From the IMG/VR virus record IMGVR_UViG_3300043570_001980, positions 62,001 to 126,000 of that record: a stretch of 64,000 nucleotides of DNA; one strand, 5' to 3'. The notes below the pieces were generated by a model that had not been told where the DNA came from, ran no database searches, and saw only the letters and a list, made by a program, of their open reading frames with translations. Below, one piece after another: positions 13,217 through 60,753 of this stretch (positions are counted from its first letter, which is position 1; every line of letters starts with the position of its first letter). Both the position numbers and the translations under genes were made by a program.

Positions 13217-13581
13217 AAACCACAACCCTCCAGCTATTGCCAACTACCTCATATGGCACACCCTCGGGCAACTACGATGGTAGCAGTTTAGACTGGTCTG
13301 GAGAAAAGCAACAAGCGTCTAATTATTATGGTGGCTTTGGTTCCTTGCAAACGTTGGCTTTTTATCTAAATGGGTTTGAGGGTTTAATTAAAATTGAAGC
13401 CACAGTTGACTCAGTACCAGCAACCGACGCTGACTGGTTCAAAGTATACGAATTTGATTCTTTAACTACCACAACCACTAACAATTTTAGTGTCAACGTC
13501 ACTGGAAACTTTACATGGATTAGAGCCAATGTAGAGGGATTTTCCGCTGGAACAATCACCAAGTTGATGTTAAGCTATTAA
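13213..13581 (+). CDS. Hypothetical beta-rich protein, possibly a virion component
   Basis: Thr/Ser/Gly-rich ORF in the late block. Confidence 0.5.
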   Translation: MKTTTLQLLPTTSYGTPSGNYDGSSLDWSGEKQQASNYYGGFGSLQTLAFYLNGFEGLIKIEATVDSVPATDADWFKVYEFDSLTTTTTNNFSVNVTGNFTWIRANVEGFSAGTITKLMLSY

Positions 13582-14009
13582 TGGACAATTCAACATTGAG
13601 CCTGCGAGTTTCTGCTACAGAACCCGAGCTCGACGTGTCAATTCATTTAAATGATGTCAATATTTTTCAAGGAAAACCCAGCGTTGACCCTGTAATTGTT
13701 AATCACAAATTTGTAGACACTGATCAGGCATACACATTGACTATTACAATGTCTGGAAAAACCATTGATCATACCAAGGTAGATGAATTTGGAAATATTA
13801 TAAAAGATGTGCTAGTTACAGTTACTGATTTTAAACTTGAAGACATTGACGTAAGCAAAATAGTATTTCAGCAGGCCACGTATCACCACAACTTTAATGG
13901 GACTCAAGACAACATTGTTGACTCTTTCCATGGTGCAATTGGCTGCAACGGTCAAGTGATTTTTAAATTTCAAGCACCATCGTACCTTTGGCTCTTAGAG
14001 AACATGTAG
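13581..14009 (+). CDS. Hypothetical protein
   Basis: Coupled to the upstream stop codon. Confidence 0.55.
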   Translation: MDNSTLSLRVSATEPELDVSIHLNDVNIFQGKPSVDPVIVNHKFVDTDQAYTLTITMSGKTIDHTKVDEFGNIIKDVLVTVTDFKLEDIDVSKIVFQQATYHHNFNGTQDNIVDSFHGAIGCNGQVIFKFQAPSYLWLLENM

Positions 14010-14023
14010 GCTAAATATAAGGT

Positions 14024-15016
14024 ATGAAAAAACTAGTCATTATGCCCGGTGGTTTCCACCCCTTTCACGCAGGCCATAAAGCTCTGTATGATGCGGCCCA
14101 AGCGGCTTTCCCCAGCGCCGATGTTTACATTGCTGCCACAGCAGACACCTCAACAAGACCTTTTCCTTTTGCAGTCAAGCAAAAGCTGGCAAAATTAGCT
14201 GGCATTCCTGCACACAGATTTATTCAAGTCAAAAATCCTTTCCGTGCCAATGAAATTACACAACATTACGATCCCAGCACTACACAGCTGATTTTTGTAC
14301 GTAGTGAAAAAGATCGTAACGAACAGCCCGTGCCCGGTGGTGTAAAAAAGGATGGTAGTGCTGGCTACTTACAACCATACAAGCGCACAGGCCTACAGCC
14401 AATGACTCAGCATGCTTACATAGCATATTTGCCTGTGGTACAGTTTGGTTCAGGTATGACCAGTGCCACAGAAATTCGTGCCAAATGGCCTGCAATGTCA
14501 CCTGAACAAAAAGCCACATTGGTTAACTCATTATATCCACAGACCCAGGGCAACGAAAAATTAACCAATGTAACAATTAAACTAATTGATGCAGGCATGG
14601 GCAGTGATGTGAAAGAAGCACTACAAGGTCCAGCCTTTGGTGTTGGTGCAGGCGGATTAAATGCAGGAATGCCAATGCCAAATGGTCCAGATAAAGAAGT
14701 TGATGAAGCTACTCTGGTCAATGATCCCGACGAAGGAATTCAAATTCGCCCTACTGGAGGTCTTGGTACCTGGGATGAAGGTAGTCTTAAGCAGAGTTTA
14801 GTACGACAACTGGTTGAGTTAGCAGAAATGCTCAAAGTTGGCAACTATCGCGGAGTGGAACATCTAATGTACAAAGCTGGTGCTATGCAAAGTAAAGTCC
14901 AAGCTCTGGCCCGATTAGAAGATTTTACTGACAAACAAGGAAGACGACCTGTTGCACGTGGGCGAGAAATTGACATTGGCGAAAACAATGACTACGTCAA
15001 TGAAACAAACAAGTAA
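14024..15016 (+). CDS. HxGH cytidylyltransferase-like protein with C-terminal accessory modules
   Basis: IMPGGFHPFHAGH; later DVKE-A and EVDE-A junctions; CTAAATA at 14011. Confidence 0.7.
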   Translation: MKKLVIMPGGFHPFHAGHKALYDAAQAAFPSADVYIAATADTSTRPFPFAVKQKLAKLAGIPAHRFIQVKNPFRANEITQHYDPSTTQLIFVRSEKDRNEQPVPGGVKKDGSAGYLQPYKRTGLQPMTQHAYIAYLPVVQFGSGMTSATEIRAKWPAMSPEQKATLVNSLYPQTQGNEKLTNVTIKLIDAGMGSDVKEALQGPAFGVGAGGLNAGMPMPNGPDKEVDEATLVNDPDEGIQIRPTGGLGTWDEGSLKQSLVRQLVELAEMLKVGNYRGVEHLMYKAGAMQSKVQALARLEDFTDKQGRRPVARGREIDIGENNDYVNETNK

Positions 15017-15217
15017 ACGTCGCGTCTATCCGCCGAAACTACCGGTTAAAGTAGTACAGCACGGATCTCCCAATGTATTAATGACTCCACTAAGAAATTG
15101 CAGTAAGGTAATGCAGTTGGGCATTGGATTAAAAATAGCATCATAAATTTGCCAACAAAAAAATAGCCTGGGTTTTGTACGTAGTTAAATAGAAGTACAT
15201 ATTTTTACGAGGAACAT

Positions 15218-16162
15218 ATGGCTGAACAACAAATCCAAGTCAACGTTGACTACCTGCGCACCACTAGAGTGCATATCTGTATGCCCTGCTACGGTGGCAT
15301 GTTAACTGAAAGCACATTCATGAGTTATATCAAATGGGCCAACACTTGCCGACAACTTGGCATTGAGTGGACCATGGAAACCATGACCAATGAATCATTG
15401 ATCAGCCGTGCTAGAAACACACTGGTTGCTAAATTCCTAAACAATCCAGACTCAACTCACTTGATGTTTATCGACGCTGATATTGGTTGGGAACCTTGGC
15501 ATTTATTAGTACTGCTTAATGCACAAAAAGATGTAGTCGGTGGACTATATCCAATGAAAACTCTACCAATTAAATGGGTAGTTAATGGGTTTGAAAATGC
15601 AGAAGTCAGTGAAGATGGTAATCTTCAAGAAGTTAGCAAAACAGGCACAGGCTTTATGCTAGTAAAGCGTGATGTGTTTGATAAACTCAATGTACATCAA
15701 GCAGTCAAGCCGTTTAAGAACGACATTGGATTGCCTGTAGAATTAGATCCATACATGAAAACATACTACGACACAGCAGTTCGCGAAGGTCGCTACTATT
15801 CAGAAGACTGGACATTCTGTGAAAACTGGCGCGACATTGGTGGTAAAGTCTGGGTCGACAAGCGTGTATTGCTCAAGCATACAGGCACCTATGTGTTTGA
15901 CTTTAACACACAGGACAAATTGTACGAAGACCTAAGTGTTATTGCCAAAGCCAATGCAGACGCTAAAAAACTAGCAGATGCACAGGCAGCTCTGCAACAG
16001 GTGCCTGTAACTCCTCGAGTGATTGCCAGTAATGAATCACCTGTTGCAGAAACAGCCAAACAAGGTAAAGCAGTAGCCAAGCCAGTTAAAGCAGTGGCTA
16101 AACCAGTCAAGGCAATAGAAACGCCTGCTCTAGCTAAAAAGAAAACAAAAGCATCTAAGTAA
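15218..16162 (+). CDS. GT-A-type glycosyltransferase-like protein with a Lys/Ala/Pro-rich tail
   Basis: HICMPCYGG, ESLISRARN, HLMFIDADIGW, GTGFML, SEDWTFC. Confidence 0.75.
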   Translation: MAEQQIQVNVDYLRTTRVHICMPCYGGMLTESTFMSYIKWANTCRQLGIEWTMETMTNESLISRARNTLVAKFLNNPDSTHLMFIDADIGWEPWHLLVLLNAQKDVVGGLYPMKTLPIKWVVNGFENAEVSEDGNLQEVSKTGTGFMLVKRDVFDKLNVHQAVKPFKNDIGLPVELDPYMKTYYDTAVREGRYYSEDWTFCENWRDIGGKVWVDKRVLLKHTGTYVFDFNTQDKLYEDLSVIAKANADAKKLADAQAALQQVPVTPRVIASNESPVAETAKQGKAVAKPVKAVAKPVKAIETPALAKKKTKASK

Positions 16163-16183
16163 TCAAAGCGGTAAATATAGTTT

Positions 16184-18772
16184 ATGAACATTCATGAACT
16201 AGATTCCTATCGTTTAAGCAACGCAATCAAGTTTAACGACAAGTTAAACCCACGCATTTGGGGAGAGGACGAACATCTTCTCCCTGATGTTCGTGACCAC
16301 TTATTGGCAATTGCGGATGACTTTCGCGAATTCCTTGGCCTAACAGACCTTGAACTAAAAGATGTTACAATATCTGGTTCAAACGCCGCCTACACATATA
16401 CACCACACAGCGACATTGATCTACACTTGGTAGTAGATTTACCCAGGGCCGATGCCAGCGACGTTTATCGTGAGCTGTTTGATGCTAAAAAATATCAGTA
16501 CAACGATCAACACAATTTTAAAATTGGCGGTTACGATGTTGAGTTGTATGTACAGAATGCCAATCAACCGCCGGTGAGCCAAGGCGAGTATTCGGTGTTG
16601 AACAATGACTGGCTACAAGTTCCCAAACGTCAACAAGCTGTGGTTGATGACATGAGCACACGTAGCAAGTACGAAGATCTAGGACACAGAATTGAGTCAG
16701 CCATTGCTGATGGTGATAGACAGCGCATGGAGTCGCTGGCTAAAAAGATACGTGAAATGCGCACAACCGGCCTGGCAAAGACTGGAGAATTTGGTCCAGA
16801 AAATCTAGCATTTAAACTGTTGAGAGCCAGTGGCTTGATTGATCGACTGCGTGAAGCCAGACTTGCCGCAAAAGATCATGAACTAAGTTTACAAGAGCGC
16901 AAGAAAAAGAAAGTACGCTACGGATATGGTGGGTACTGGATGCCAGGATTCTCGTTTGGCGACGGCGAGGGCGGCGATGGTGGTGGTGGCGAAAGTGTAC
17001 AAGAAAACACAGAATCCCCAGACATCAATCAAGACATTAGGCAAGTACTACAACCATTCATTGATAGTTGTGTTGAGTATCTTGGAATTGAACAAGCCCC
17101 AAAAATTATATTAAAACGTGACCCAGAATGGACACGTAGAAACGGCACATTTGGTCAATTTGATCCCGAAACACGTTCAGTCACACTGGCAGTGAGTGGC
17201 CGTCATGTGCTAGATATTTTGCGTACTCTAGCACATGAGCTCACACACTCTCGTCAAAACGAACTAGCTGACATGCCCGTGGATGCAGGCGAAACAGGAT
17301 CCCCTTACGAAGACGAAGCCAATGCCAAAGCAGGCCAAATTATGCGACACTGGGTTGATCAGTATCCTGAATTCTTCAAAGATGCGCCACTAGAGGAATC
17401 TTTAAAAGATAAATTGGCTGCCGCTGCCGCTGCCGCTTGCATAGCTGGCACGCCCGGGTGTGCTACCACACAAAGCATGTCCACCGCTGATACATTGAAA
17501 GGTATTCAAACTGTTGGCCGAACTGCACAAACAGTAAAGCAAATGGGTAGCGCAGGCGCAAAAGAAGAATTAATACAACAACTAAAGAATGAACTGCGTA
17601 GACAACGTGGGCAGTTGCCAGAAACAGTCACTGACGAAGATTATGATCCCAACGGAAAACCACCCGGTCCAGAATTCAAACCCACCATGCCAGCAGGCAC
17701 AGTCAAAGTAGATGTCAGCGATGTCTACGATTGGTACAAGCTAGGACAACACATTAGTGATTTAAAAGGGCTGGGTCAGCATGACTTTGGAAGTGGTCCT
17801 CCTAGTACTATTATGGCATTTGGCAGCGAAGAAGAAGAACACAAGTATATCGACGCATTAAAGAAAACAGGATTGACCACAACTGACATTGATCCTGTTG
17901 ACCCCAATCGACCCAAAGGCATGCCTCGCCAGAAGACAGATCCTACATACAATGTCAACGAAGCATTTGATCAACCTTATCCACTACTTCGATGGGAAAA
18001 GGGTGACTTTGGTGATGTAGACGCAATCGCACGATTAGATGACGGAACTTTTCTAAGTATCATGTTCAACAAGGGATTTAGTAAAGATTCAAAAGAGGAA
18101 GCATGGAGTGTTGAGTTTTATAGAAACAACAGCCAAGAAGTCACAGGTGAAGGTGATTCTCAACGAGTATTTGCCACTGTGTTAAGTGCTATACAAACAT
18201 TTATTAAAAAGTACAAGCCTAATAGAATGACCTTTTCGGCCTCAAAAGAAGTTGAACCGGGACAAAACTCACAAAGCAGAGCCAGACTCTACGATAGTTT
18301 GGTTCAGCGTTATGCCAGAGCTTGGGGTTATAGAGCTTTCCGTGCAGATACCGGCAACAAAGTCATCTACGAACTAAGCAGAAGACAACCTGTAGTAGCA
18401 GAAGGTCCATTTGTTCAAAGAATTGTTCATCCTAATAAAATCAACATCTACGTGCGAGCAGGCAAAAAACCCAAACTGGTTGCAACCAATGTGTCTTATA
18501 ATCTATTAGACAAATACATTGACAAAGTGGTAGACAAATATCCACAGTTTAGGCCCACTGATTTTTCTTTTCAATCTGCTGATGAAAAAGTAATAGCAGA
18601 AGCCACCGGATACATTCCTGTCAACGACAAAGAAGCTCGTGATCCACGCTACAGCATGGCCATCACACAAGACATCAAGCCTGGCGAAGTGCAACGTCAA
18701 GCCAAAAAAATGGGCTGGCGCACCACTGCCGCTGGAACACCACCTACATTAAAGACATCAGGAAGAATGTAA
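16184..18772 (+). CDS. Putative head-packaged polyprotein: pol-beta-like nucleotidyltransferase + HEXXH metallopeptidase-like + further modules
   Basis: ISGSNAAY...SDIDLH; TLAHELTH; junctions VQE-N, LEE-S, VNE-A, VAE-G, IAE-A. Confidence 0.7.
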   Translation: MNIHELDSYRLSNAIKFNDKLNPRIWGEDEHLLPDVRDHLLAIADDFREFLGLTDLELKDVTISGSNAAYTYTPHSDIDLHLVVDLPRADASDVYRELFDAKKYQYNDQHNFKIGGYDVELYVQNANQPPVSQGEYSVLNNDWLQVPKRQQAVVDDMSTRSKYEDLGHRIESAIADGDRQRMESLAKKIREMRTTGLAKTGEFGPENLAFKLLRASGLIDRLREARLAAKDHELSLQERKKKKVRYGYGGYWMPGFSFGDGEGGDGGGGESVQENTESPDINQDIRQVLQPFIDSCVEYLGIEQAPKIILKRDPEWTRRNGTFGQFDPETRSVTLAVSGRHVLDILRTLAHELTHSRQNELADMPVDAGETGSPYEDEANAKAGQIMRHWVDQYPEFFKDAPLEESLKDKLAAAAAAACIAGTPGCATTQSMSTADTLKGIQTVGRTAQTVKQMGSAGAKEELIQQLKNELRRQRGQLPETVTDEDYDPNGKPPGPEFKPTMPAGTVKVDVSDVYDWYKLGQHISDLKGLGQHDFGSGPPSTIMAFGSEEEEHKYIDALKKTGLTTTDIDPVDPNRPKGMPRQKTDPTYNVNEAFDQPYPLLRWEKGDFGDVDAIARLDDGTFLSIMFNKGFSKDSKEEAWSVEFYRNNSQEVTGEGDSQRVFATVLSAIQTFIKKYKPNRMTFSASKEVEPGQNSQSRARLYDSLVQRYARAWGYRAFRADTGNKVIYELSRRQPVVAEGPFVQRIVHPNKINIYVRAGKKPKLVATNVSYNLLDKYIDKVVDKYPQFRPTDFSFQSADEKVIAEATGYIPVNDKEARDPRYSMAITQDIKPGEVQRQAKKMGWRTTAAGTPPTLKTSGRM

Positions 18773-20220
18773 TGAGAGCAACAGAGTTTATAGTTGAAAA
18801 CGCAGATCAAGCCGCAGTCAGTGCTTTGCAAAAAAAGCATGGCTGGTCTACGGGCACAACAGTCAATGGAGATCTTTACTTTACTTGGCAAGGGCTTACT
18901 TATGTGTTTTATGGTGAGCGTATGCGTATCAACGTCCCAAACACTGACCGCTCTATATCAGTTGTGTGGGGCAAGAAACCTGATTGGCAAGGCCGAGGCA
19001 ATGATGAAATTAGTTTTGCACAAGCAGTACAACGAAAAATTCTAAAATTTGACTTGTCAATTTGGCAACAATTGGACCGTGGTCAAATCAATGATAATCA
19101 AGCCCTGCAAAAATTCAAGGCCGAAAATGAACGGCAGGCTAGAGAAGCTCTTGCACAGGATACTACGGAAGGTCGAGAAAAGTTTAACCAGGCTGTGATG
19201 AAACCCGGTTTTGAGTTCAGTCAAGAAATCAACGGTGTCACGTATGAAGTAACAAATGATGAGGGCCCGGGTCCTGTGGTCACTGTAACTGACAAGAACA
19301 AAGAAGTAATTGCTCAAGCGGCATTCTGGAAGCACAAAACTCGTCCAGGATTAGAAAGCCTAAACACTTACGTTGAGCCCGAGTGGCAAGGTCAAGGCAT
19401 TGCCGCAAACATGTATGCTGTGATGCGCATGTTGGGTGCTAACATATCACCGTCTACCATTCAAACAGATGACGGCCAGGCCATGTGGGCCAAGTGGAGT
19501 AAACAAGGTGATGCTAAACATCTAAAGAATCTAAATCCCAAAATCAAAGAGCAAACAGTAACAGAAGGCAAGTTGAGTGTGGATGTACCCAACGAAGAAT
19601 GGTTGCAGGACAAGATTGACTATGCCAAGAGCAAAGGGCGTAACAGCTACGGTGTTCCTTACATGGGCAGTACCACTGCTGGGGTTGTTGGAACTCCACC
19701 TAGAGTGCGTGTAATGCGACTAGCTTCGTTGCCTGGTATGCGCAACGAACAAATGAATGTGCGCAAAAATGATCTAAAGTGGTTAATGGATTACATGGAA
19801 CGCACAGGTAAGTTGCCGCCCATGGGCAGTAATCCCAACGAGGAATACCTGCCCTACATCATGGTGGCCTACAATGGTGAAGCCTGGGTCAACGAAGGCA
19901 ATCATCGTATCATGGCTGCCTACAGATTAAACTGGCCCGACATGCCCATTGAAATACGTTACTTTGATGGTGGTGAAAGAATTGAATCAGGGCCAATGGC
20001 TCCGGGAAAGATTGGGCTGGGTACACCAGTGGCAGAATCTCATGAACAATGTCCTGAGTGTGGCGGAGCAATGTTCAGTGAATTAATGATCAACGAAAAA
20101 CAAGATGCCTGTTACTACAAAGTTAAAAGCCGTTACAAAGTATGGCCTAGTGCTTATGCCAGTGGTGCACTGGTGCAATGTCGTAAAAAAGGTGCGGCCA
20201 ATTGGGGGAACAAAAAATGA
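18772..20220 (+). CDS. Putative head-packaged polyprotein: GNAT acetyltransferase + ParB-like domain + Cys module
   Basis: Starts MRATEFIVE; YVEPEWQGQGIA (GNAT motif A); NEGNHRIMAA (ParB-like); junctions VTE-G and VAE-S. Confidence 0.7.
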   Translation: MRATEFIVENADQAAVSALQKKHGWSTGTTVNGDLYFTWQGLTYVFYGERMRINVPNTDRSISVVWGKKPDWQGRGNDEISFAQAVQRKILKFDLSIWQQLDRGQINDNQALQKFKAENERQAREALAQDTTEGREKFNQAVMKPGFEFSQEINGVTYEVTNDEGPGPVVTVTDKNKEVIAQAAFWKHKTRPGLESLNTYVEPEWQGQGIAANMYAVMRMLGANISPSTIQTDDGQAMWAKWSKQGDAKHLKNLNPKIKEQTVTEGKLSVDVPNEEWLQDKIDYAKSKGRNSYGVPYMGSTTAGVVGTPPRVRVMRLASLPGMRNEQMNVRKNDLKWLMDYMERTGKLPPMGSNPNEEYLPYIMVAYNGEAWVNEGNHRIMAAYRLNWPDMPIEIRYFDGGERIESGPMAPGKIGLGTPVAESHEQCPECGGAMFSELMINEKQDACYYKVKSRYKVWPSAYASGALVQCRKKGAANWGNKK

Positions 20221-21731
20221 GATATCGTGAAATATTAGAAGCCTGCTGGAAAGGCTATCACAAAGAAGGCATGAAAACCATGTTTGGCAAACGCTATCCC
20301 AACTGCGTGAAAAATACCAACGAAGAACTAGAAGAAGATCTACGCAAATGGTTCAAAGAGAAGTGGGTGCGTTTTGGTCCAGATGGCAAGATTCGTGGAG
20401 ATTGTGCCAGGGGTGATGATAGTGAAGGCAAGCCAAAATGTTTGCCACAAAGCAAGGCACACGGTCTAGGTAAAAAGGGTCGTGCAAGTGCGGCAAGTCG
20501 TAAGCGCAGACAAGATCCCAATCCAGAGCGTAGTGGTCCAGCAATCAATGTCAACACCAAGAAAAAATCAAACGAAGGTGCAGTTGGAGTTGGTTGGTCT
20601 CACAAGCCCGAAGCAATTGACAAGATTCATTCTTGGCAAAATTCAGAGACAGGTACAGATTCAAGAATGTTTCAGGGTTACAAAATGAAGTTCACTCCCA
20701 ATGGGATGTTTATCTACAAAGGTGGCGATGTGGTACATAAGCAGCCTGGAGATTTTTCAGACCCGACCAATAAAGACATCATGGCGGCTAAGAGAAGAAT
20801 AACAATGTTGATTAATAAAACGCAAGGCGTGGCGGAAGGCTCTGAGCAACAGTACGCCGTTACCATTGACGCAATCAATCACGGTGTGTTGGCACCTGTA
20901 ACAGTTGTTGCCGGCAGTTCAGAAGAAGCAAAACAAAAGGCCATTGCTGGTGTTAAAGCATCAATGATCAAGCGTGGATATGAATTAATGGTGCGTAGTG
21001 TATCAGCCAAGCCCGAACAAGGTGTGGCGGAAAACATGGACCACAGCAAAGATGGTCGCGCTGTGGAAGAACTCAAGGCAGCATTGATAGATCGCAAACA
21101 ACGATTACAGTCTGCCAGTGATGATCAAGTGTACGATAGCATTGACAAGATCATGACACGTATTGCAAAAACTCACAGCATCAGTGGACAGAAACTGCAT
21201 GACCTGTGGGTGGACCGGTACAAACAAGTACCTGATACATGGATCATGAACGAAGATGCCAGTGGTATAGATTTTGACATGCAGTTTGACGATGACACCG
21301 GGTCGTTTGCAACAGTGACCGCTCGAGCACAAGGCCGCACACTAGGTTCGGTCAAGTTCTTTATGGACGGAGATACCTTGGAAGCAGACATGGTAGAAGT
21401 GGATGACCGGTATCGTGGACAAGGCATTGCGGCGGCCATGTATGACTATGCCAAGAGCCAAGGTTATACAATAGAAAAAAGTTCGAATCTAACACCCGAT
21501 GGTGATCACTTCTGGAACAAAAATCGCGGAGAAGAAACTGTTTGGGAACAAGGCATGGCAGAGAACTTTGCCGACGGTAAGAATCCTGGACGCAAAGGCC
21601 TAGCCAAACGTGTGGGTGTGAACTGCAAACAACCTGTTGCCAAACTGCGTAGTATTGCTGCCAATTCATCAGGCGAACGACAACGAATGGCACATTGGTG
21701 TGCCAACATGAAATCAGGAAAGAAAAAATGA
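20217..21731 (+). CDS. Putative head-packaged polyprotein with a GNAT domain and small Cys/basic modules
   Basis: Starts MRYREILE; CWKGY...PNCVK; DLRKWFKEKWV; VEVDDRYRGQGIA; two QGVAE and one QGMAE. Confidence 0.7.
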   Translation: MRYREILEACWKGYHKEGMKTMFGKRYPNCVKNTNEELEEDLRKWFKEKWVRFGPDGKIRGDCARGDDSEGKPKCLPQSKAHGLGKKGRASAASRKRRQDPNPERSGPAINVNTKKKSNEGAVGVGWSHKPEAIDKIHSWQNSETGTDSRMFQGYKMKFTPNGMFIYKGGDVVHKQPGDFSDPTNKDIMAAKRRITMLINKTQGVAEGSEQQYAVTIDAINHGVLAPVTVVAGSSEEAKQKAIAGVKASMIKRGYELMVRSVSAKPEQGVAENMDHSKDGRAVEELKAALIDRKQRLQSASDDQVYDSIDKIMTRIAKTHSISGQKLHDLWVDRYKQVPDTWIMNEDASGIDFDMQFDDDTGSFATVTARAQGRTLGSVKFFMDGDTLEADMVEVDDRYRGQGIAAAMYDYAKSQGYTIEKSSNLTPDGDHFWNKNRGEETVWEQGMAENFADGKNPGRKGLAKRVGVNCKQPVAKLRSIAANSSGERQRMAHWCANMKSGKKK

Positions 21732-22132
21732 GAAATTTTATTAATCTACTGGAAGCTATAGAAAAAGGCTGCCCGCTTGCTACACAAAGCATTGAACTAA
21801 ATTTAAAAAATCGTCAAAAAGCCATAGACGAATACCATTATGGACCTCTCAATCCCAACGAGCCCAACGATGAATATTGGGAAGAATTAGCAGACAAATG
21901 GAACACAAATGACATTAAATCAGTAAAACAAAACCGCTGTGGGAATTGTGCAGCCTTTGACATTTCTGAATCCATGCAAGATTGTATTGCAAAAGGCATT
22001 GGTGAGGAACCAGGGTCAGATCCACACGATACAATAGATGCTGGGCAACTAGGATATTGTAAGTTTTTGAAATTTAAATGTGCCGCCAAACGAACTTGCG
22101 ATGCCTGGGTAGAAGGCGGCCCTGTTACATGA
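21728..22132 (+). CDS. Cys-rich hypothetical protein with an IP-like propeptide
   Basis: MRNFINLLE-A; CGNCAAF, YCKFLKFKC, TCDAW. Confidence 0.6.
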   Translation: MRNFINLLEAIEKGCPLATQSIELNLKNRQKAIDEYHYGPLNPNEPNDEYWEELADKWNTNDIKSVKQNRCGNCAAFDISESMQDCIAKGIGEEPGSDPHDTIDAGQLGYCKFLKFKCAAKRTCDAWVEGGPVT

Positions 22133-22275
22133 AATTTGGTCGTAAAAAATAATGTCAGCATCTTCAAAATCTATTTTATTAGTAGGATGCTTGTTTAGCG
22201 ATTATTGCGGATTTGGAGAGATCATTGGAAATCATAAGTAATCAATAAAGATTGCCTTTGCAAATAGGAAAAAAA

Positions 22276-23769
22276 ATGAGATTTAACGAACTTCAAGAAA
22301 CTACCCTAGGCGGATTTAAAGTAAAACCGTTGCATATTGAGAACACCGGTGTTAGTGAAGAGCTTGAGCATAACTTTGACAAACACATAGTTGCGGTCAC
22401 TGTCAGTGATCCTCACAGTTCAGCTGTGACACAACGTCAAGAACTAAAACAACGCAAGGCCAAGGTACGTGCATTAGATCGTGAATCTGCTGTTAATACT
22501 GCTGTCAATTGGTATCGTAAACAAGGCTACAAAGTACACGATCATCACTACATTGGCACAGATAACGGTATTGCCGAAGGCTCTGTAACTAAAAAGCCGC
22601 AACCCTATAATGACCCCAATTGGTCCAAAAACTTACCTAAAGAAAAATTAGATGCATTGGCTGGACCAAGATATAAAAAAGATAAAAAAGACAAAGGTGT
22701 AGCCGAAGCAATCAAGTTAAATGCGCCACAACGCACAATACCACGTGATGAATTGCAGGGCTATGCTGACCGTATCAAGACTGGCACCAAAACCAAACGT
22801 GACAAGTTTAGCCCTATCATTCACGGCAGCAATATCAAGGCCATTACCAAAGATGATGAGAACACTGAGTGGGACTTGGATGATTTGTCCAAGCAGATTA
22901 CCACACGTCCCCGGGCCATACTTGGCACTAATGCCAAAATGGAAAAGTCTAAAACTGAAGGCGAAATCATTTATGACCTGACATTGCCTGCACTATCAGG
23001 TATTGTTGTGGATGAAGATACTGGCGACTTTGTGGAAATTACCACATGCCCGGGTGCTGGTGCTTGCCAACTATTCTGTTATGCTAGAAAAGGTGGCTAT
23101 GTTATGTTCCCTGCTAGCAGTATGAGTGCGGCGCAGGCACTAAACTTCCTGGTCAATGACCCTGAAGGTTATACTGCCAGAGTCAATCAAGAAATCAAAA
23201 CAATCAAAGCCAAAACAGACAAAGCTGGTGTACAGTTAGTTGTTCGTTGGCACGATGCTGGTGATTTCTTCTCCAAGGAGTATTTGGATCTAGCATATGG
23301 TGTTGCCCAATCCAATCCTGATGTGCAGTTTTATGCCTACACCAAGATGGGCGATGTTGCCACAGGTGCCGCACCTGCTAACTTTACCATGAACTTTTCA
23401 TCAGGCAGCAAGCGTGGTGAAGAAAAGAAAGTGGAATTCTACAAACAACAAAACCCTGGTGCCACAGTCAAGCAAGGTGTTACTGTTCCCAAGGACATGT
23501 TCTTTGATCTAATTGCACGTAAAGGCACTAGCTTGATCAAAGACGCCAAGGGTCGCACACAATTTGCCAGCCCCGAAGCACTTGACACATTTAAGCAACG
23601 TATTGCACAACAGTACAAGGTTGCTCCTGATTCAATTATTACCTACGATCAAATGCTAGCAACTCCAGTGGGCACAGAGCCCAAGTGGAATGTTATTGTA
23701 CAACCGGGTGCTGGTGACCGTGCAGCCAATCGCAAGGATGTAATTGACAGTTACTTGATGTTCCACTGA
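22276..23769 (+). CDS. Putative head-packaged polyprotein with a C-terminal Gp88-like domain
   Basis: MRFNELQE-T; GIAE-G and GVAE-A junctions; TCPGAGAC..FCYA, VRWHDAGDF, FYAYTK. Confidence 0.6.
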   Translation: MRFNELQETTLGGFKVKPLHIENTGVSEELEHNFDKHIVAVTVSDPHSSAVTQRQELKQRKAKVRALDRESAVNTAVNWYRKQGYKVHDHHYIGTDNGIAEGSVTKKPQPYNDPNWSKNLPKEKLDALAGPRYKKDKKDKGVAEAIKLNAPQRTIPRDELQGYADRIKTGTKTKRDKFSPIIHGSNIKAITKDDENTEWDLDDLSKQITTRPRAILGTNAKMEKSKTEGEIIYDLTLPALSGIVVDEDTGDFVEITTCPGAGACQLFCYARKGGYVMFPASSMSAAQALNFLVNDPEGYTARVNQEIKTIKAKTDKAGVQLVVRWHDAGDFFSKEYLDLAYGVAQSNPDVQFYAYTKMGDVATGAAPANFTMNFSSGSKRGEEKKVEFYKQQNPGATVKQGVTVPKDMFFDLIARKGTSLIKDAKGRTQFASPEALDTFKQRIAQQYKVAPDSIITYDQMLATPVGTEPKWNVIVQPGAGDRAANRKDVIDSYLMFH

Positions 23770-23770
23770 T

Positions 23771-23971
23771 ATGCGCTACAACGAAATCAAGCCTGTTAAA
23801 ACCAAGATGAAAACCTATGTTGTAAAGATAAAATTACAGCAAACAGGCTACACCAATATCATCGACACCACAGTGATGGCTCGCACACCAGAAATGGCTC
23901 GTAGACTACTCCGACAACAATACAACAACAAGCATGTGGTTGTTGGACAGCCAAAAGAACTCAAAGTTTAG
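23771..23971 (+). CDS. Small basic hypothetical protein
   Basis: MRYNEI start; coupled to the upstream gene. Confidence 0.55.
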   Translation: MRYNEIKPVKTKMKTYVVKIKLQQTGYTNIIDTTVMARTPEMARRLLRQQYNNKHVVVGQPKELKV

Positions 23972-23998
23972 TTCAGTTAACGCCCAACTAAATACTGG

Positions 23999-24298
23999 GT
24001 GAAAAAACAATTTGTAAAAGCTTTTTTTGATTTACATTGCGACTGGCAAGGATTACCACCTTCCTATCGAATCTACGTCAACGATGAATTATTTGCTGAA
24101 CGTACATTCTATTGGGAAAATGAATACCTAAAAGAAATACTGCAAATAGAAGCACCGGCAGGAATGTACACAGTTAAGTTTGAGCCGCTAAAGCCCAACT
24201 TGGCCACGTTCCAGATGGAAAATTATGGAATTGAACACGGATCGGCTCGCTGGGTTGATCAACAAACCTTGGAGATTATATTCGATGCGACTACGTGA
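23999..24298 (+). CDS. Hypothetical protein
   Basis: GTG start 5 nt after CTAAATA (23988). Confidence 0.5.
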   Translation: MKKQFVKAFFDLHCDWQGLPPSYRIYVNDELFAERTFYWENEYLKEILQIEAPAGMYTVKFEPLKPNLATFQMENYGIEHGSARWVDQQTLEIIFDATT

Positions 24299-24452
24299 AA
24301 TAACTGAAAGTATGGGCGGCACATGCTCAGGCGGTATTGCTACTGTGGCTCAACCAATGGGCGAAGTGATAACTAGGACTAAGAGTACTAAACCGGCTAA
24401 ATATGCTAATAGCGCACAAAAAATGGTGCCTGTAAAACCTAGGAAAAAATAA
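24285..24452 (+). CDS. Small basic protein with an IP-like propeptide
   Basis: MRLREITE-S start at ATG 24285. Confidence 0.55.
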   Translation: MRLREITESMGGTCSGGIATVAQPMGEVITRTKSTKPAKYANSAQKMVPVKPRKK

Positions 24453-24892
24453 TGTTATCGGACGATTTAAAGACCTTGCTGGCCACACAATATGCTTTGA
24501 GTATCAAAGCACAGAATTTTCACTGGAATGTGGAAGGTCCTGACTTTGCTCAATACCACGACTTCTTTGCCAACTTCTATGAAGAGGTTTACAGCGCAGT
24601 TGATCGAATCGCTGAATACATTCGCACCTTGCAAGAATACAGCCCGGGAAGTTTTGAGCGTTTTCAAGAACTGTCTATTATACAAGGACAAACAAAGATC
24701 CCACGTGCTCGATTGATGATTGAAGAATTGCTGTCAGACAACGGCGCCCTAATTGATCTGTTGAATCAGACATTTGTCAGTGCTGAACAAGAAAACAACC
24801 AGGGCATTGCCAACTTCATTGCTGAACGCTTGGACGCACAGGCCAAGCATGGCTGGATGCTGAGAAGTTTCTTAAAAGGCGACCGGGCATGA
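24452..24892 (+). CDS. dps: Dps / DNA-binding ferritin-like protein
   Basis: KAQNFHWNVEGPDF..HDFF...Y...D.IAEYIR, and C-terminal KHGWML. Confidence 0.92.
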   Translation: MLSDDLKTLLATQYALSIKAQNFHWNVEGPDFAQYHDFFANFYEEVYSAVDRIAEYIRTLQEYSPGSFERFQELSIIQGQTKIPRARLMIEELLSDNGALIDLLNQTFVSAEQENNQGIANFIAERLDAQAKHGWMLRSFLKGDRA

Positions 24893-25482
24893 GCGATTTA
24901 AAAGATATTTTAGCAAAGCTAGATAAAATTGCCGAGGGAGACATTACTCCCGTGAATGTTAAATCTGGACTTAATAAACAACAAAGGCGAGTACCTGAAC
25001 TTCCTGCGCTGTTCAAGCCAAGAAGTATCAATGTATTAACCAATAAAACCGATCCTGAGCATCCTACCAAGGGATACTTTGTTGGCTCAGAAAGTGTTGA
25101 ACAAGACGAAGATCAAGAAACCATCGCCGAAGTGGTCACATCCGAAGATGTAGTCAGCACAGTGAAGAAAAAACTAGGCGATTACCTAGCTGACCTTTCA
25201 AAAGAAATCAAGTCAGACTCTGATCTCAAGGACAAGATTCCACAAGAAGTTGATCAAATTGGTTCTTCAGTTAGAACTATTACCACAGACGACGGTCAAG
25301 AAATTAAAATCCACGGCAACGAGGATGATGGTTTCAGAATTACAATTAAAAACAAACCACATAGTGCAAAGTTTGAATCACTCAAACATGCCGAGATGGC
25401 CTGCGAAATGTACTGCTCACGTCGTAGAGCACGTACTATGGAAACTTCACAGGCCACACCTGATTACCTGGATGAAGCATAA
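24889..25482 (+). CDS. Hypothetical acidic protein, putative head-packaged
   Basis: KIAE-G, TIAE-V, ends YLDEA. Confidence 0.55.
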   Translation: MSDLKDILAKLDKIAEGDITPVNVKSGLNKQQRRVPELPALFKPRSINVLTNKTDPEHPTKGYFVGSESVEQDEDQETIAEVVTSEDVVSTVKKKLGDYLADLSKEIKSDSDLKDKIPQEVDQIGSSVRTITTDDGQEIKIHGNEDDGFRITIKNKPHSAKFESLKHAEMACEMYCSRRRARTMETSQATPDYLDEA

Positions 25483-27164
25483 TGAATCTCAATAACTTAT
25501 TCGAAGCTGCCAACCCGGCGCAACAAGCTGCCATTGCTATAGCAAAGAAAAAAGCTGGTGAAAAACCCAAGAACAAAGGCCTGACTGAATTTGCTCCACC
25601 CGGTGGGAACAACGGTGATTCGGGACGCTGGTACACAGATGACGAGCTGGCAGACATCATTGGTGATGATTGGTTTGAAGATTTTGATGTCAGCAACGAT
25701 GGATTTAACATTGATGCATACGGCGAAAAGGCCAAGAAGAATTTAGTGGGCTATGCCAACTCATGGTTTGATGACAAAGGTTACAATGTTAACGTAATGG
25801 GTGTAGAACATAATGATGTTGACCATGATTTAAAATGGTACATTGTTGGTAGTTTCCAGAATGATAATTTTGCAGGTAAAGATGTAGACGAAGGCTTGGG
25901 TTCCAAGTTAGCTGGATTAGGTCTTGCTGGAGCAATGGCTCTTGGCTCAGCAGGCGCCAATGCCAGAGTTACTCCTGATGGCCAAGGCGGTTTCACTGGC
26001 GGGCTAAAGCCAAGTACAACAGTGACAGCACCTGCTGATAATAAACCGGCCGCAGAAGCACCAAAAGGATTTAGCAAAGAATATCTACAAAAGGCAGCAG
26101 ACCCAAATAGATTTGGTAGATACATGATCAGTGTTGAAAAAGCACAAGAATTGCTGAAGAACATGCAAGAAGCTGTAGCGGAAGGTTCACAGCGAGTTGA
26201 TTCACTTGTGACCGACGCACTAAAAATAATGCAGGGTTCAGACGTAAATGATGCTGTACGAGCTCTAAAGACTGTGCTTGGAGATAGAGAATACAACGGC
26301 CGCCGTGGTCATTACAATTTCTATGTTCGACAACTGATGGATATGTATGGCCAGCAAGGTGTAACAGAAGCTGGTTACAGAAACTACGATGACAATCGCA
26401 CAGGTTTTGGTAAGAATTCACAAGCATATCGTGCTGATGGTGGTGCCAACGATGAAGATCACGAAAGCGATCGTCGCCGTGAACAACAAGTGCAGTCCGG
26501 TACATGGTACATTCGTCTCAATGGAAAAATCATCAAAGACAAACAAGGCAATCCTTATTCATTCCGCGGTAAGGCTGCCGCAAACAAAGCCGCACTAACA
26601 ATGCAGGCTAAACTGTTCAATCAGGGCAAAGAGTTTATGTTGACTACCAATCCCAACGATAACCCTCAAGGTGTGGCGGAAGGCTGGAAAGATGTTGTTG
26701 CAGGTAGTGCAATGGCATTAAGTTCACTAGGTGTTGGCGCTCAAACAATGCCAAGCATGAATGGTCAACAAGTAGAATTAGCAAACAAATATTTTCAGGT
26801 CTTAGTGCAACGAGCAAAAGAAGATGGTAGAGAATTAGACACAAGAACATTGAATGTGTTGAAGGCAAAGGCACAAGATGCGGCTGCACAAAAGATGCAA
26901 CAATCTAAGAAATCACAAACTAATTTTCCAAGTCAAGGCAGTGAGCGTAGAGTTTCTAAAGATATAGGTACTTTTGAATCGCAAGGCGTGGCAGAAGGCC
27001 CTGCTGTAGACGCATACATGGCAGGCAAGAGTCCGGCACTGGCTCACTTTGCTGATCAACTAGATAAGAGTACTGAAGTAAATTTTCAGAAAAACAAAGG
27101 TGTAGCGGAAGGTCAACGAAGCGGCTACGGTCGCGGCTACGCTAGTTATAAATCCAGCAAGTAA
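25482..27164 (+). CDS. Putative head-packaged polyprotein with multiple GVAE junctions and internal signal-peptide-like segments
   Basis: MNLNNLFE-A; GLTE-F, VDE-G, AVAE-G, QGVTE-A, two QGVAE-G, KGVAE-G. Confidence 0.7.
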   Translation: MNLNNLFEAANPAQQAAIAIAKKKAGEKPKNKGLTEFAPPGGNNGDSGRWYTDDELADIIGDDWFEDFDVSNDGFNIDAYGEKAKKNLVGYANSWFDDKGYNVNVMGVEHNDVDHDLKWYIVGSFQNDNFAGKDVDEGLGSKLAGLGLAGAMALGSAGANARVTPDGQGGFTGGLKPSTTVTAPADNKPAAEAPKGFSKEYLQKAADPNRFGRYMISVEKAQELLKNMQEAVAEGSQRVDSLVTDALKIMQGSDVNDAVRALKTVLGDREYNGRRGHYNFYVRQLMDMYGQQGVTEAGYRNYDDNRTGFGKNSQAYRADGGANDEDHESDRRREQQVQSGTWYIRLNGKIIKDKQGNPYSFRGKAAANKAALTMQAKLFNQGKEFMLTTNPNDNPQGVAEGWKDVVAGSAMALSSLGVGAQTMPSMNGQQVELANKYFQVLVQRAKEDGRELDTRTLNVLKAKAQDAAAQKMQQSKKSQTNFPSQGSERRVSKDIGTFESQGVAEGPAVDAYMAGKSPALAHFADQLDKSTEVNFQKNKGVAEGQRSGYGRGYASYKSSK

Positions 27165-27168
27165 ATCA

Positions 27169-27249
27169 ATGCAAAACAACGAGTACCCAGTGTATCCTGA
27201 ACAAGAGGGCGAATGGGATCGCCCTCTCAATCCCCACAGCCCAGTATAA
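27169..27249 (+). CDS. Putative 26-aa micropeptide
   Basis: MQNNEYPVYPEQEGEWDRPLNPHSPV, directly after the 25482..27164 stop. Confidence 0.4.
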   Translation: MQNNEYPVYPEQEGEWDRPLNPHSPV

Positions 27250-27274
27250 ATTATCAACTACTTTTTTTAAGAAC

Positions 27275-27360
27275 ACACCTTAGGACCGGTACTTGTTACC
27301 GTGGTGTAGGCGGCTGCTGCCTTGGACGGCCTGATTCGCTACCAGGAATCCAAAAGTGAG
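27275..27360 (+). ncRNA. Candidate structured RNA (multi-hairpin with possible pseudoknot)
   Basis: GC-rich island in an AT-rich intergenic region: ACACC/GGTGT, CGGTA/TACCG, AGGC/GCCT, TGGA/TCCA, CCTG/CAGG. Confidence 0.5.
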
Positions 27361-27372
27361 CATAATTACTAT

Positions 27373-28443
27373 ATGTCAAAATACAAACTAAATTGGATAC
27401 AAAAACCACTAGTACAATTTCCAGCAAAAAATTTTCAAAATCTTGTTTGTCTTAGTCCTTTTGTGGGCATGTGCATTGATACAGATGGTGGAATAACATT
27501 ATGTGGTTGTCAAGATTGGATGCCCTCCAAGGTTGGAAATTTATTAATCAATTCACTAGACGAAATATTGTCCAATGCTGGCAGTACCAATATACGTCAA
27601 AGCATCATCAACGGAACCTACGACTTTTGCAATGAAAACACCTGTGGAGTTTTAAAAAGTGATCTACTTAATGTTAAAGAAAATGTAGGCGATGATATTA
27701 AGCCCTTGCTTCTTGATGCATCTCGTTACATTATGCCCAAAGAGATTTGGGTATCCGGCGATCGCACCTGTAATCTCAGTTGCCCAAGTTGTCGAACGGA
27801 AATTATAAAAAACAATGATGCACAGACCGAACATCTAGAACACCTAGGGCAAACGCTAAAATCAAATCTGTTTTGTACACCCACTGATCGACCAATTGTA
27901 CTACACGTGAGTACCAGTGGGGAACTGTTTGCTAGTCCAATGTTGTTGTCGTTTGTTAACACAATATCAACTGAGGATTTTCCAAACGTACAATTGGCTA
28001 TACAATCAAATGGTTTACTGGTACCAGAACGATGGCATCGACTCGAGAGCATGCAAGAAAAAGTAAAATCAATTACCATTACCACTGATGCCGCAAGGCC
28101 CGCTACATATGAAAAATTGCGTCGTGGTGGACGCTGGGACGACCTACAACATGCATTATTGTGGATCTCTGAAAAGAAAAAACAAAATGGCATGCTGTTT
28201 AAAATTCGAATGATTGTTCAAAAAGATAATTTTGAAGAAATGCTAGAATTTTACAACATGGGACAGGAACTGGGCGTAGATTTAGTCGAATATGGAAGAA
28301 TTGGAAATTGGGGTACATTTTCCAACGATGAATTTAAGTTGATTGATGTATTTAATCCCAAACACAGTCAATATCCACAAGCACAAGAAAACTTAGATCA
28401 AATAAAAAATCTTGACCGAGTAATTTTATTTGGCGGATTATAA
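27373..28443 (+). CDS. Radical SAM protein with an N-terminal SPASM/twitch-like Cys cluster
   Basis: CNLSCPSC (CxxxCxxC) and CLSPF...LCGC. Start moved to ATG 27373. Confidence 0.8.
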   Translation: MSKYKLNWIQKPLVQFPAKNFQNLVCLSPFVGMCIDTDGGITLCGCQDWMPSKVGNLLINSLDEILSNAGSTNIRQSIINGTYDFCNENTCGVLKSDLLNVKENVGDDIKPLLLDASRYIMPKEIWVSGDRTCNLSCPSCRTEIIKNNDAQTEHLEHLGQTLKSNLFCTPTDRPIVLHVSTSGELFASPMLLSFVNTISTEDFPNVQLAIQSNGLLVPERWHRLESMQEKVKSITITTDAARPATYEKLRRGGRWDDLQHALLWISEKKKQNGMLFKIRMIVQKDNFEEMLEFYNMGQELGVDLVEYGRIGNWGTFSNDEFKLIDVFNPKHSQYPQAQENLDQIKNLDRVILFGGL

Positions 28444-28467
28444 TTCTACCAAAACAGCCATATATTG

Positions 28468-28496
28468 TTGACCTAGGCAGGTAAACCTGTTATACT
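28468..28496 (+). promoter_or_regulatory. Sigma70-type promoter
   Basis: TTGACC-17 nt-TATACT upstream of the replication block. Confidence 0.65.
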
Positions 28497-28516
28497 ATGT
28501 TTTTAGGAGAACTCTC

Positions 28517-28777
28517 GTGGACAACAAAACATTTAATGGCGATCAAAAGATTAAACTTATTCAAATTATCAATGAAGGCATGCAAGTCATGCACGAAGTT
28601 GAAACTTTAAATGGCGGCCTAAACGATACCATTAAAGCCATCGCCGAAGAACTTGAAATCAAACCAGCTGTTCTTAAAAAAGCAATCAAGATCGCACACA
28701 AAGCTGAACTAGGAAAAACACGACAGGACCACGAGCTCCTGGAAACTATTCTCGAAACTGCCGGCAAAACTCTTTAA
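28517..28777 (+). CDS. Small DNA-binding protein (T4 DsbA / GapR-like)
   Basis: Helical pattern LNDTIKAIAEELEIKPAVLKKAIKIAHK; aggaga SD. Confidence 0.5.
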   Translation: MDNKTFNGDQKIKLIQIINEGMQVMHEVETLNGGLNDTIKAIAEELEIKPAVLKKAIKIAHKAELGKTRQDHELLETILETAGKTL

Positions 28778-28786
28778 AGGTAAAAT

Positions 28787-29380
28787 ATGGCATTAGTACC
28801 AATGGTGCTGGAACAAACCAGCAAAGGTGAGCGTAGCTATGATATCTATAGCCGCTTGTTACGTGACCGTGTGATTTTACTTGAAGGTGAAGTACATGAT
28901 CAAATGGCAAATCTAATTGTTGCTCAACTACTATTTCTCGAGAGCGAAAACCCAGACAAAGATATCAGTATGTACATCAACAGCCCTGGAGGTAGTGTCA
29001 CTGCTGGTATGGCTATCTATGATACCATGCAGTTTATTAAACCCGATGTTAATACCATTGTAATGGGACAAGCATGTAGCATGGGAAGTTTGTTGGCACA
29101 ATCGGGTGCCAAAGGCAAGCGCATGATCCTGCCTAATGCACGACACATGATACACCAACCTAGTGGTGGCGCTCGTGGCATGCAAAGCGATATCGAAATT
29201 AGCTACAAAGAAATTACCTATTTGAAGAAACGTTTAACTGAAATTTATGTCAAGCACAACTCAACGGGTAAAACTTTTGAACAGCTAACTGAAGATATGG
29301 ATCGTGACAAGTTTATGTCAGCAGAGGAATCAGTTAATTACGGTCTTGCCGACAAAGTGATAACTACACGTGATATTTAA
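28787..29380 (+). CDS. clpP: ATP-dependent Clp protease proteolytic subunit
   Basis: [23 protein letters not shown] (catalytic Ser), MIHQP, DRD. Confidence 0.95.
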
Positions 29381-29396
29381 TGTTAAGTGGAGATAA

Positions 29397-58776: not shown

Positions 58777-58834
58777 TTCGTGATGCCATTCATGGGTCAT
58801 GAATAAAATCTTGCTTAATTTAAAGGAGAAAAAT

Positions 58835-58837
<3 letters not shown>
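58777..58837 (+). promoter_or_regulatory. ROSE-like RNA thermometer in the groES 5' UTR
   Basis: Two hairpins; TCTTGCTT pairs with AAAGGAGA (SD) with a bulged G, the ROSE U(U/C)GCU signature. Confidence 0.65.

Positions 58838-60753
<1,916 letters not shown>

Follow-up and report, generated by a model that had tools for sequence, protein, structure and literature searches.

The window analyzed here is a 64,000-nucleotide stretch of viral DNA (positions 62,001 to 126,000 of IMG/VR record IMGVR_UViG_3300043570_001980) and is part of a 128,804-bp fragment rated 35% complete. Positions 16184-27164 of the window, referred to below as the block, are a single run of + strand genes. Six of these genes (18772-27164) open with a short leader peptide of the form M-[RN]-x-x-[E/N]-[FIL]-x(1-2)-E, and several large products contain further hydrophobic-x-Glu sites between their predicted modules. 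On our reading the block would encode phage-head cargo. The genes and sites are listed below, with proteins numbered P1 to P10 and a slash marking each predicted cut.

16184..18772, + strand: P1, an 862-residue predicted polyprotein whose start, MNIHEL, is weakly leader-like; nucleotidyltransferase-like N-terminal module, HExxH zincin-like module, DUF6934-like module and small basic C-terminal modules
17954..17962, + strand: P1 junction V-N-E593, followed by AFDQPY; stand-alone in relatives as MRAHEFIAE/AFDQPY and MRAQEFVAE/AFD
18772..20220, + strand: P2, a 482-residue predicted polyprotein; leader, unknown module, GNAT-like module, ParB/sulfiredoxin-like module and small Cys-rich basic C-terminal module
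18772..18798, + strand: P2 leader MRATEFIVE/N, also among the hits when the full genome was scanned for the exact pattern
19159..19167, + strand: P2 junction T-T-E132, followed by GREKFNQ; separate genes in relatives start MRSQEFIRE/YKEKFNQ and MRAHEFLSE/GQEEFNQ
19558..19566, + strand: P2 junction V-T-E265, followed by GKLSVDVP; stand-alone genes of ~160 residues start MRAQEFITE/GKLSVDVP
20029..20037, + strand: P2 junction V-A-E422, followed by SHEQCPECGG; relatives have MNIKDIITE/SKHKCPHCGG and MIISELFE/TPQQCPECGG
20217..21731, + strand: P3, a 504-residue predicted polyprotein; leader, small basic Cys modules, 65-residue module, helical plus GNAT module and 55-residue basic module
20217..20240, + strand: P3 leader MRYREILE/A, residues 3-8 of which are helical in an AlphaFold2 model
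20823..20840, + strand: P3 linker QGVAE/G (E207), within a low-confidence segment of that model, 196-229
21018..21035, + strand: P3 linker QGVAE/N (E272), followed by NMDHSK; separate genes in relatives start MRAQEFIVSE/NMDHSK and MRAQEFIE/NMNHSK
21549..21566, + strand: P3 linker QGMAE/N (E449), followed by NFADGK; the next 55-residue module stands alone in at least 5 relatives as MRAQEFVNE/NFADGK
21728..22132, + strand: P4, 134 residues; leader MRNFINLLE/A (21728-21754) and an acidic Cys-rich module
22276..23769, + strand: P5, 497 residues; leader MRFNELQE/T (22276-22299), short modules and a C-terminal GP88 module (PF17338, 22708-23766)
22564..22581, + strand: P5 linker NGIAE/G (E101)
22693..22710, + strand: P5 linker KGVAE/A (E144), directly preceding the GP88 module
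23771..23971, + strand: P6, 66 residues, basic, with a degenerate leader, MRYNEIKPV
23999..24298, + strand: P7, 99 residues, no leader; conserved in relatives, block membership uncertain
24285..24452, + strand: P8, 55 residues; leader MRLREITE/S (24285-24308) and a 47-residue basic peptide with an isoelectric point (pI) of 10.5
24452..24892, + strand: Dps/ferritin-like gene (PF00210, E = 5.6e-23), no leader
24889..25482, + strand: P9, 197 residues, with a longer leader-like N-terminus that ends K-I-A-E16/G and is conserved in relatives
25482..27164, + strand: P10, 560 residues; leader MNLNNLFE/A (25482-25505) and six hydrophobic-x-Glu linkers
25575..25592, + strand: P10 linker KGLTE/F (E36)
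26172..26183, + strand: P10 junction A-V-A-E234, followed by GSQRVDSL; a relative has the next module behind MKQGVAE/NTQQVDSL
26355..26372, + strand: P10 linker QGVTE/A (E296)
26667..26684, + strand: P10 linker QGVAE/G (E400)
26982..26999, + strand: P10 linker QGVAE/G (E505)
27096..27113, + strand: P10 linker KGVAE/G (E543)

A 341,990-bp contig rated 95% complete is 100% identical to the window over positions 14000-30000 (16 kb), so the contig and the window come from the same phage. The source of the window is an uncultured T4-like jumbo phage of ~342 kb. The nearest matches to the family-B DNA polymerase of the fragment are in the jumbo phages Phosso (51%) and Atu_ph07 (46%) and in Rak2-like phages. 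Megablast of the block, tblastn of P10, and blastn and tblastn of a gene pair with MRAREFI-type starts (described below) found no relative among 50,697 phage records, indicating that this phage has no close cultured relative there. In other near-complete jumbo genomes the block occupies the same place, between a glycosyltransferase gene and the DNA polymerase gene. The position of the Dps/ferritin-like gene (24452-24892) in the block is kept in all related loci.

All eight N-termini quoted in the first-pass annotation of this DNA were recovered in + strand open reading frames (ORFs) where it had placed them. It had taken all eight for leaders; this holds for six, whereas the starts of P1 (16184) and P6 (23771) are weak or doubtful. 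Most start codons, though not those at 16184 and 23771, follow a purine-rich stretch of the GGA/GAGG type at a distance of 6-12 nt, and several genes overlap the preceding stop codon as ATGA. The start codons of the block are credible.

The leaders are 8-10 residues long and hydrophobic at subsite P3 of the predicted cut. Their pooled logo reads Q-E-F-[ILV]-x-E followed by A/S/N/G/D; subsite P3 is I, L or V in 137 of 145 leaders, while the Glu at subsite P1 is fixed by the search pattern. A resemblance to the T4 propeptide had been proposed, and it is borne out by the family consensus MRAQEF[ILV]xE, which has the QEFIxE core of the T4 capsid-targeting sequence MKTYQEFIAE (PMC8442874). Residues 4 and 7 of the T4 leader serve targeting and residues 8 and 10 serve processing (PMC8442874, PMC9026906). 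Asp at position 10 stops cutting and not targeting, and the T4 prohead protease gp21 cleaves after L/I-x-E (PMC9026906). Judged by these positions, the leaders found here retain the Phe, Ile and Glu that matter in T4.

When the leader was written as a regular expression, it matched 7 N-termini among the 421 crude ORFs of the near-complete genome, against 0.86 expected from the frequency of the pattern at all positions (binomial P = 3e-5). Four of the 7 matches fall in the 10-gene block (hypergeometric P = 5.5e-6). Chance was rejected as the source of the leader pattern on the strength of these two values. The codons of the conserved residues vary (AGA/CGC/CGA, GAA/GAG, GTG/GTA, GCG/GCC/GCA); the Arg and Glu codons differ among leaders, showing that conservation is at the level of the peptide and not of the DNA.

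A second signal, absent from the first-pass annotation, is a repeated linker. In its strict form, G-[VIML]-[AT]-E-[GANS], mostly after Q or K, it is present in nine copies in P3, P5 and P10, compared with 0.11 expected, and it was not found elsewhere in the 128.8-kb contig (~190 ORFs). Looser hydrophobic-x-Glu sites are present in P1, P2 and P10. Relatives contain 141 linker copies, with a pooled logo of [Q/K]-Q-G-V-A-E followed by G/A/D/S. As judged from their sequences, the large proteins are predicted polyproteins in which modules (4-8 each in P1, P2, P3, P5 and P10) are joined by [Q/K]-G-[V/I/M]-[A/T]-E linkers.

The strongest evidence is comparative. A protein-guided scan identified 35 related IMG/VR viral loci, in which 55 of 410 distinct ORFs start with a leader of the above consensus and 110 QGVAE-type linkers occur. 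When degenerate DNA encoding MRAQEFIxE was scanned for exact matches, 72 viral contigs were hit; our own information-content estimate predicted roughly 0.5. Of the 918 ORFs on these contigs, 130 have the leader. Modules that are internal in a window protein are frequently separate genes in a relative. Sixteen fission/fusion events involve a leader at the start of the relative's gene, and in all 16 the end of that leader coincides exactly with an internal Glu of the window protein.

Two modules show this exchange in depth. The ParB-like module that follows E265 of P2 has 183 homologues in a collection of 5.8 billion proteins, and 88 of the best 120 start with a leader. The L-x-V-D-V-P start is conserved in 105 homologues, and in 94 of these the closest Glu upstream is 1-2 residues away from it. 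The Glu rule applies to both kinds of border of this module, 69 being N-terminal leaders and 36 internal junctions (for example TVAE/G, GMSE/G, DLLE/G and AMTE/G), all with a hydrophobic-x-Glu ending. The GP88 module invariably occupies the C-terminal end, preceded by N-terminal parts that vary, and a leader opens 76 of 120 homologues. Its junction, before AIKLNAPQR, is a Glu with V, L, I or M at subsite P3 in nearly all of the 71 homologues in which a junction was found (the preceding residues are GVEE, GVAE, LNE, IDE and similar). T4-like N-termini, such as MTKTYREFLQ and MLSFRQFLVE, persist among the 50%-identity clusters of the GP88 family, and hundreds of metagenomic protein clusters show the leader and junction rule. 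At module borders, the end of a leader and an internal hydrophobic-x-Glu site are interchangeable. Only hydrophobic-x-Glu and a following small residue are kept, at gene starts and internal joints alike, which gives these positions the look of protease sites.

Leader genes also occur elsewhere in the same phage. A second group lies outside the window's own contig, at 261681-273080 and 309347-310575 of the 341,990-bp contig, with the starts MKTFAQYLIE/S, MKTLKDYLTE/A, MRAREFIAE/R and MRAREFITE/Q, and includes an 820-residue protein with a GEQGVAEGT linker. A gene pair starting MRAQEFITERD and MRAREFIAEQK recurs in dozens of viral contigs. On the window's own contig, outside the window, the leader-like starts MRDLINILDN and MELRDHINLVEA are found at genome positions 13377-14954 (-) and 41635-42183 (+).

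The gp21 and gp23 models had no match in the window's own 128.8-kb contig, the 35%-complete fragment; the gp21- and gp23-type genes were located only in the 341,990-bp contig. The latter encodes a T4-type head module in T4 order: portal, two acidic core proteins, a Peptidase_S77 protease, scaffold and a gp23-type capsid protein. The same phage thus has, in its 95%-complete contig, both a protease of the gp21 family and a scaffolding core of T4 type. The protease, encoded at 225700-226326 of this contig, was identified by Pfam with E = 6e-25 and matches T4 gp21 (PDB 5JBL) with E = 1.8e-12, with the DHP (His) and SSRG (Ser) motifs aligned. The core proteins, of 72 and 271 residues, are acidic and gp67/gp68-like. 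Candidate sites are found in the head proteins as well. The gp23-type capsid protein has I-L-E34/N and L-K-E42/N beside the residue that aligns with the mature N-terminus of T4 gp23, the N-terminal region of the protease has a ...NIIVE/G site, and the core proteins begin MSKFEQLIE/Y and MILNE/V.

The cargo modules include three GNAT acetyltransferase-like domains, and the small predicted products are mostly basic (pI 9-11). The claim that the leaders sit on otherwise unrelated proteins is correct only in part, since GNAT domains and small basic modules are common to several of them. In P1, residues 14-236 match phrog_36119, NTP_transf_2 and DUF6934 match weakly, and the HExxH module (motif HELTH) gave only weak metallopeptidase matches (E about 0.01). 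The relatives of P1 are 695-1726 residues long, with the same modules reordered. The ParB_N/sulfiredoxin-like call for P2 comes from a language-model score of 0.92 only; a PDB profile search with 37 homologues of this module found no significant match. Family searches with P4 gave no match, P10 had no cultured-phage homologue, and an NCBIfam search of the cargo proteins added nothing. P8 is identical in several related contigs. P10 is mostly low-complexity or disordered, and its ESM Atlas model has a predicted local distance difference test (pLDDT) value of 0.46, of low confidence and with no usable Atlas match.

An AlphaFold2 model of P3, built from a 27-sequence alignment, has a mean pLDDT of 65. 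Its low-confidence stretches, 196-229, 263-269 and 435-449, lie over or just before E207, E272 and E449, and confident units begin at 273 (the helical plus GNAT module) and 450 (pLDDT about 90). A Foldseek search with this model matched GNAT folds. The GP88 module of P5 (Pfam E = 1.9e-32) was modeled by AlphaFold2 with a pLDDT of 91. It has three invariant Cys residues (CX5CX3C) together with RWHDAGDF and YAYTK motifs, and its family spans 1271 clusters at 50% identity. When the GP88 model was compared with the PDB and Swiss-Prot models by Foldseek, all template-modeling (TM) scores were below 0.3. Its VIA-align neighbors were radical-SAM enzymes with Z-scores of 5-7 (spore photoproduct lyase 6.9, QueE 5.9), below the trustworthy level. 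GP88 may be an unrecognized iron-sulfur enzyme family, possibly radical-SAM-like.

A link to mature virions comes from cyanophages. In S-SM1, 13 peptides from purified virions were assigned to the gene cluster T4-GC119, labeled a structural protein (Sullivan et al. 2010, PMC3037559, Suppl. Table 8). Its S-SM1 member, SSM1_115, has three modules in common with P2 and P3: the C-terminal module of P2 is 84% identical (E = 2e-18), and two N-terminal modules of P3 match with E = 7e-10 and 1e-8. Another member, Syn9 gp114, has an internal start MPPTYNEIFNE that is similar to the leader of T4. The wide range of lengths within T4-GC119, 276-2985 nt, indicates module shuffling. T4-GC190, labeled cytidylyltransferase, is also an S-SM1 virion protein (PMC3037559, Suppl. 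Table 8). A cytidylyltransferase-like protein of S-B68, whose membership of T4-GC190 is unchecked, has the T4-like leader MKNFNSFLTE/A. Just upstream of the block, at window positions 14024-15016, lies a gene for a 330-residue protein of the cytidylyl/adenylyltransferase family, which has no leader.

Taken together, these observations make it probable that the block encodes capsid-targeted cargo polyproteins that are cut after Glu by a gp21-type prohead protease. The propeptide and head-cargo reading of the first-pass annotation is the best supported, and all computational tests that could be run agree with it. In the mechanism that we propose, the 8-10-residue leader would dock the cargo on the T4-type scaffolding core during prohead assembly. 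The large genes would yield polyproteins of folded or basic modules on short flexible linkers. Once the shell has closed, the gp21-type serine prohead protease would cut after the Glu of each exposed hydrophobic-x-Glu site, removing the leader and freeing the modules inside the capsid. The modules would then stay with the DNA, be ejected and act early in infection, like T4 IPI, IPII, IPIII and Alt. The cargo would comprise a nucleotidyltransferase-like protein, a zincin-like peptidase, GNATs, a ParB/sulfiredoxin-like domain, GP88 and many small basic peptides.

Several points weigh against this reading. Neither P1 nor P6 has a canonical cleavable leader. MNIHEL of P1 offers as sole candidate I-H-E at residues 3-5, inside the N-terminal extension of the nucleotidyltransferase-like domain. 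MRYNEIKPV of P6 is the first half of the motif and lacks the Glu at the cleavage position; an orthologue in another genome starts MKAQEFITR and is likewise uncleavable, so that P6, by the precedent of Asp-10 in T4, might be targeted yet uncut. The Dps gene and P7 lie within the block and have no leader, and SSM1_115 has no clear leader at its own start. None of the four cultured jumbo phages closest to this one (Phosso, Atu_ph07, XaC1 and Vibrio 2.275.O) has a start of the form M[RK]xxEF[ILV]xE. Because hydrophobic-x-Glu is short and common, single sites beyond the strict linker are uncertain. No late promoter is evident at the block: the glycosyltransferase gene is the first of the operon and is preceded, at 33 nt, only by a weak TTAAATA. 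A complex prediction for the gp21-like protease with P8 scored 0.00, which is evidence neither way. Finally, targeting, cleavage by this particular protease, retention in the head, ejection and function of the block proteins are all steps that we infer.

Three other explanations were weighed. Cleavage by the prohead protease need not imply delivery to the host. In T4, core proteins leave the head after cleavage at many L/I-x-E sites, and the block proteins might be auxiliary scaffold or core of the same sort, degraded and expelled before DNA packaging like T4 gp22, gp67 and gp68. A jumbo capsid may need additional core mass, and P10, largely disordered and with six sites, would suit such a role; some products, P10 above all, could be expendable core material. 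As an account of the whole block we consider this unlikely. Many modules are well-folded enzyme-like domains (GNAT, ParB-like, GP88 with its pLDDT of 91) with no obvious scaffolding role, the sites lie between domains and not inside them, and the related cyanophage protein is present in mature virions.

The same sites might alternatively serve a different protease, with cutting in the cytoplasm and no packaging. P1 itself holds a HELTH zincin-like module, and zincin peptidases have been proposed to self-process polyvalent proteins (Iyer et al., PMC5512222); ClpP (28787-29380) and a Clp ATPase (10044-12335) flank the block and could act together as ClpP with a ClpA/B-like ATPase. We nevertheless think this quite improbable. 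T4 gp21 and the homologous proteases of giant phages have a published specificity that matches the logo of the cut sites (hydrophobic subsite P3, Glu at P1 and a small P1' residue), and the leader has the QEFIxE of the T4 targeting peptide. The ClpP is of the cellular type, which does not cut at defined motifs, and the zincin module is itself shuffled cargo with its own leader in relatives. Homologous modules occur, moreover, in S-SM1 virions.

It is very improbable that the N-termini and linkers are recombination or translation-initiation cassettes for shuffling, conserved as nucleic acid: conserved leader-coding sequence does flank polymorphic internal-protein genes in T-even phages, and module shuffling is rampant in the block family, but the codons for the conserved residues vary, leaders and linkers have in common only hydrophobic-x-Glu and a small residue, the position of the Glu is kept across clusters below 50% identity, and the linkers are internal and so are not translation starts.

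The surroundings of the block were also inspected. A search of the full genome for the canonical T4 late promoter, TATAAATA, gave just 7 occurrences on the + strand, none of which lies at the block. A k-mer search for upstream motifs found [CT]ATAAATA, a T4 late promoter variant, before structural genes, and TGCTATAAT, an extended -10 of the early type; the early-type promoter TGnTATAAT was not found inside the block. The phage encodes a chaperone and protease set consisting of DnaJ, a ClpA/B-type double-AAA ATPase with Clp_N, a cellular-type ClpP, GroES and GroEL (9177-9968, 10044-12335, 28787-29380, 58799-59122 and 59134-60753). The neighboring ClpP (28787-29380) was tried and rejected as a prohead protease: it scored 99.7 bits with the head-maturation model NF045542 (cut-off 120) and 317 bits with the cellular ClpP subfamily (cut-off 249). 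Radical-SAM genes are found at 27373-28443, close to the block, and at 42221-44101, further downstream; one has a B12-binding domain.

The T4 capsid-targeting peptide is a textbook route for loading the head and is also an engineering tool. The presence of nearly the same peptide in a distant uncultured jumbo lineage suggests an old and widespread mechanism. There is about an even chance that this is a general cargo-cassette system of environmental T4-like phages, in which a module is carried either as a single gene starting MRAQEFIxE or as a part of a polyprotein spliced by QGVAEG. If so, the prohead protease would be an in-capsid polyprotein processor, much like the proteases of RNA viruses, and dozens of enzymes and DNA-binding peptides could be loaded with one targeting signal per polyprotein and delivered with the genome. 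The leader and junction rule would make virion-delivered effectors predictable from metagenomes, yielding many candidate early anti-host or anti-defense enzymes. The inside of the capsid would be the likely location of the widespread, uncharacterized GP88 family. The natural linkers might also let several cargos ride behind a single targeting signal.

Other phages offer partial parallels. In phiKZ, 201phi2-1 and SPN3US, a gp21 homologue cleaves many head proteins behind the Glu of A/S/G-x-E, some of them more than once, and cargo is ejected into the host (PMC5694885, PMC9026906). Those phages are of a different lineage; their propeptides are usually >100 residues long, compared with 8-10 here, subsite P3 is small there and hydrophobic here, and no conserved short leader or repeated linker has been reported for them. 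The T4-GC119 proteins (Syn9 gp114 and S-SM1 SSM1_115) have three small Cys/Lys-rich modules in common with P2 and P3. They consist of small basic modules only, with no enzyme modules and no evident QGVAEG linker.

Polyvalent proteins carry from two to 15 effector-type domains per polypeptide in variable order, in a phage or a conjugative element (Iyer et al. 2017, PMC5512222). Like the block proteins they are multi-domain and predicted to travel with the DNA, and in both cases zincin-like, GNAT, ParB-like and nucleotidyltransferase-type domains are reordered, the zincin-like and ParB-like modules of the block being putative. The signature domains of polyvalent proteins include zincin metallopeptidase, ParB, ART and LPD (polyvalent-protein-associated) families; no Pfam LPD or ART family was detected in the block proteins. 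The domains of the block proteins are separated by sites of the prohead-protease type and not of the built-in-peptidase type, and each domain here can also be a leader-tagged single gene.

The closest parallel is with IPI, IPII, IPIII and Alt of T4. Both systems have a leader of ~10 residues that ends in hydrophobic-x-Glu and has a QEFIxE core, and in both the same phage has a gp21-family protease and a T4-type core. The leader here is one residue shorter and begins MR and not MK, and this system is known from genes alone. Polyproteins with a repeated QGVAEG linker are found here, whereas no such description was found for T4 in the literature searched. Many small basic products and diverse cargo behind a conserved leader are features of both systems; one class of product here is of the host-modifying-enzyme type, as is Alt, and the cargo here includes large folded enzymes. 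With ~11 kb, nine leader-type genes and about 30 predicted products, the block would encode a much larger cargo set than that of T4.

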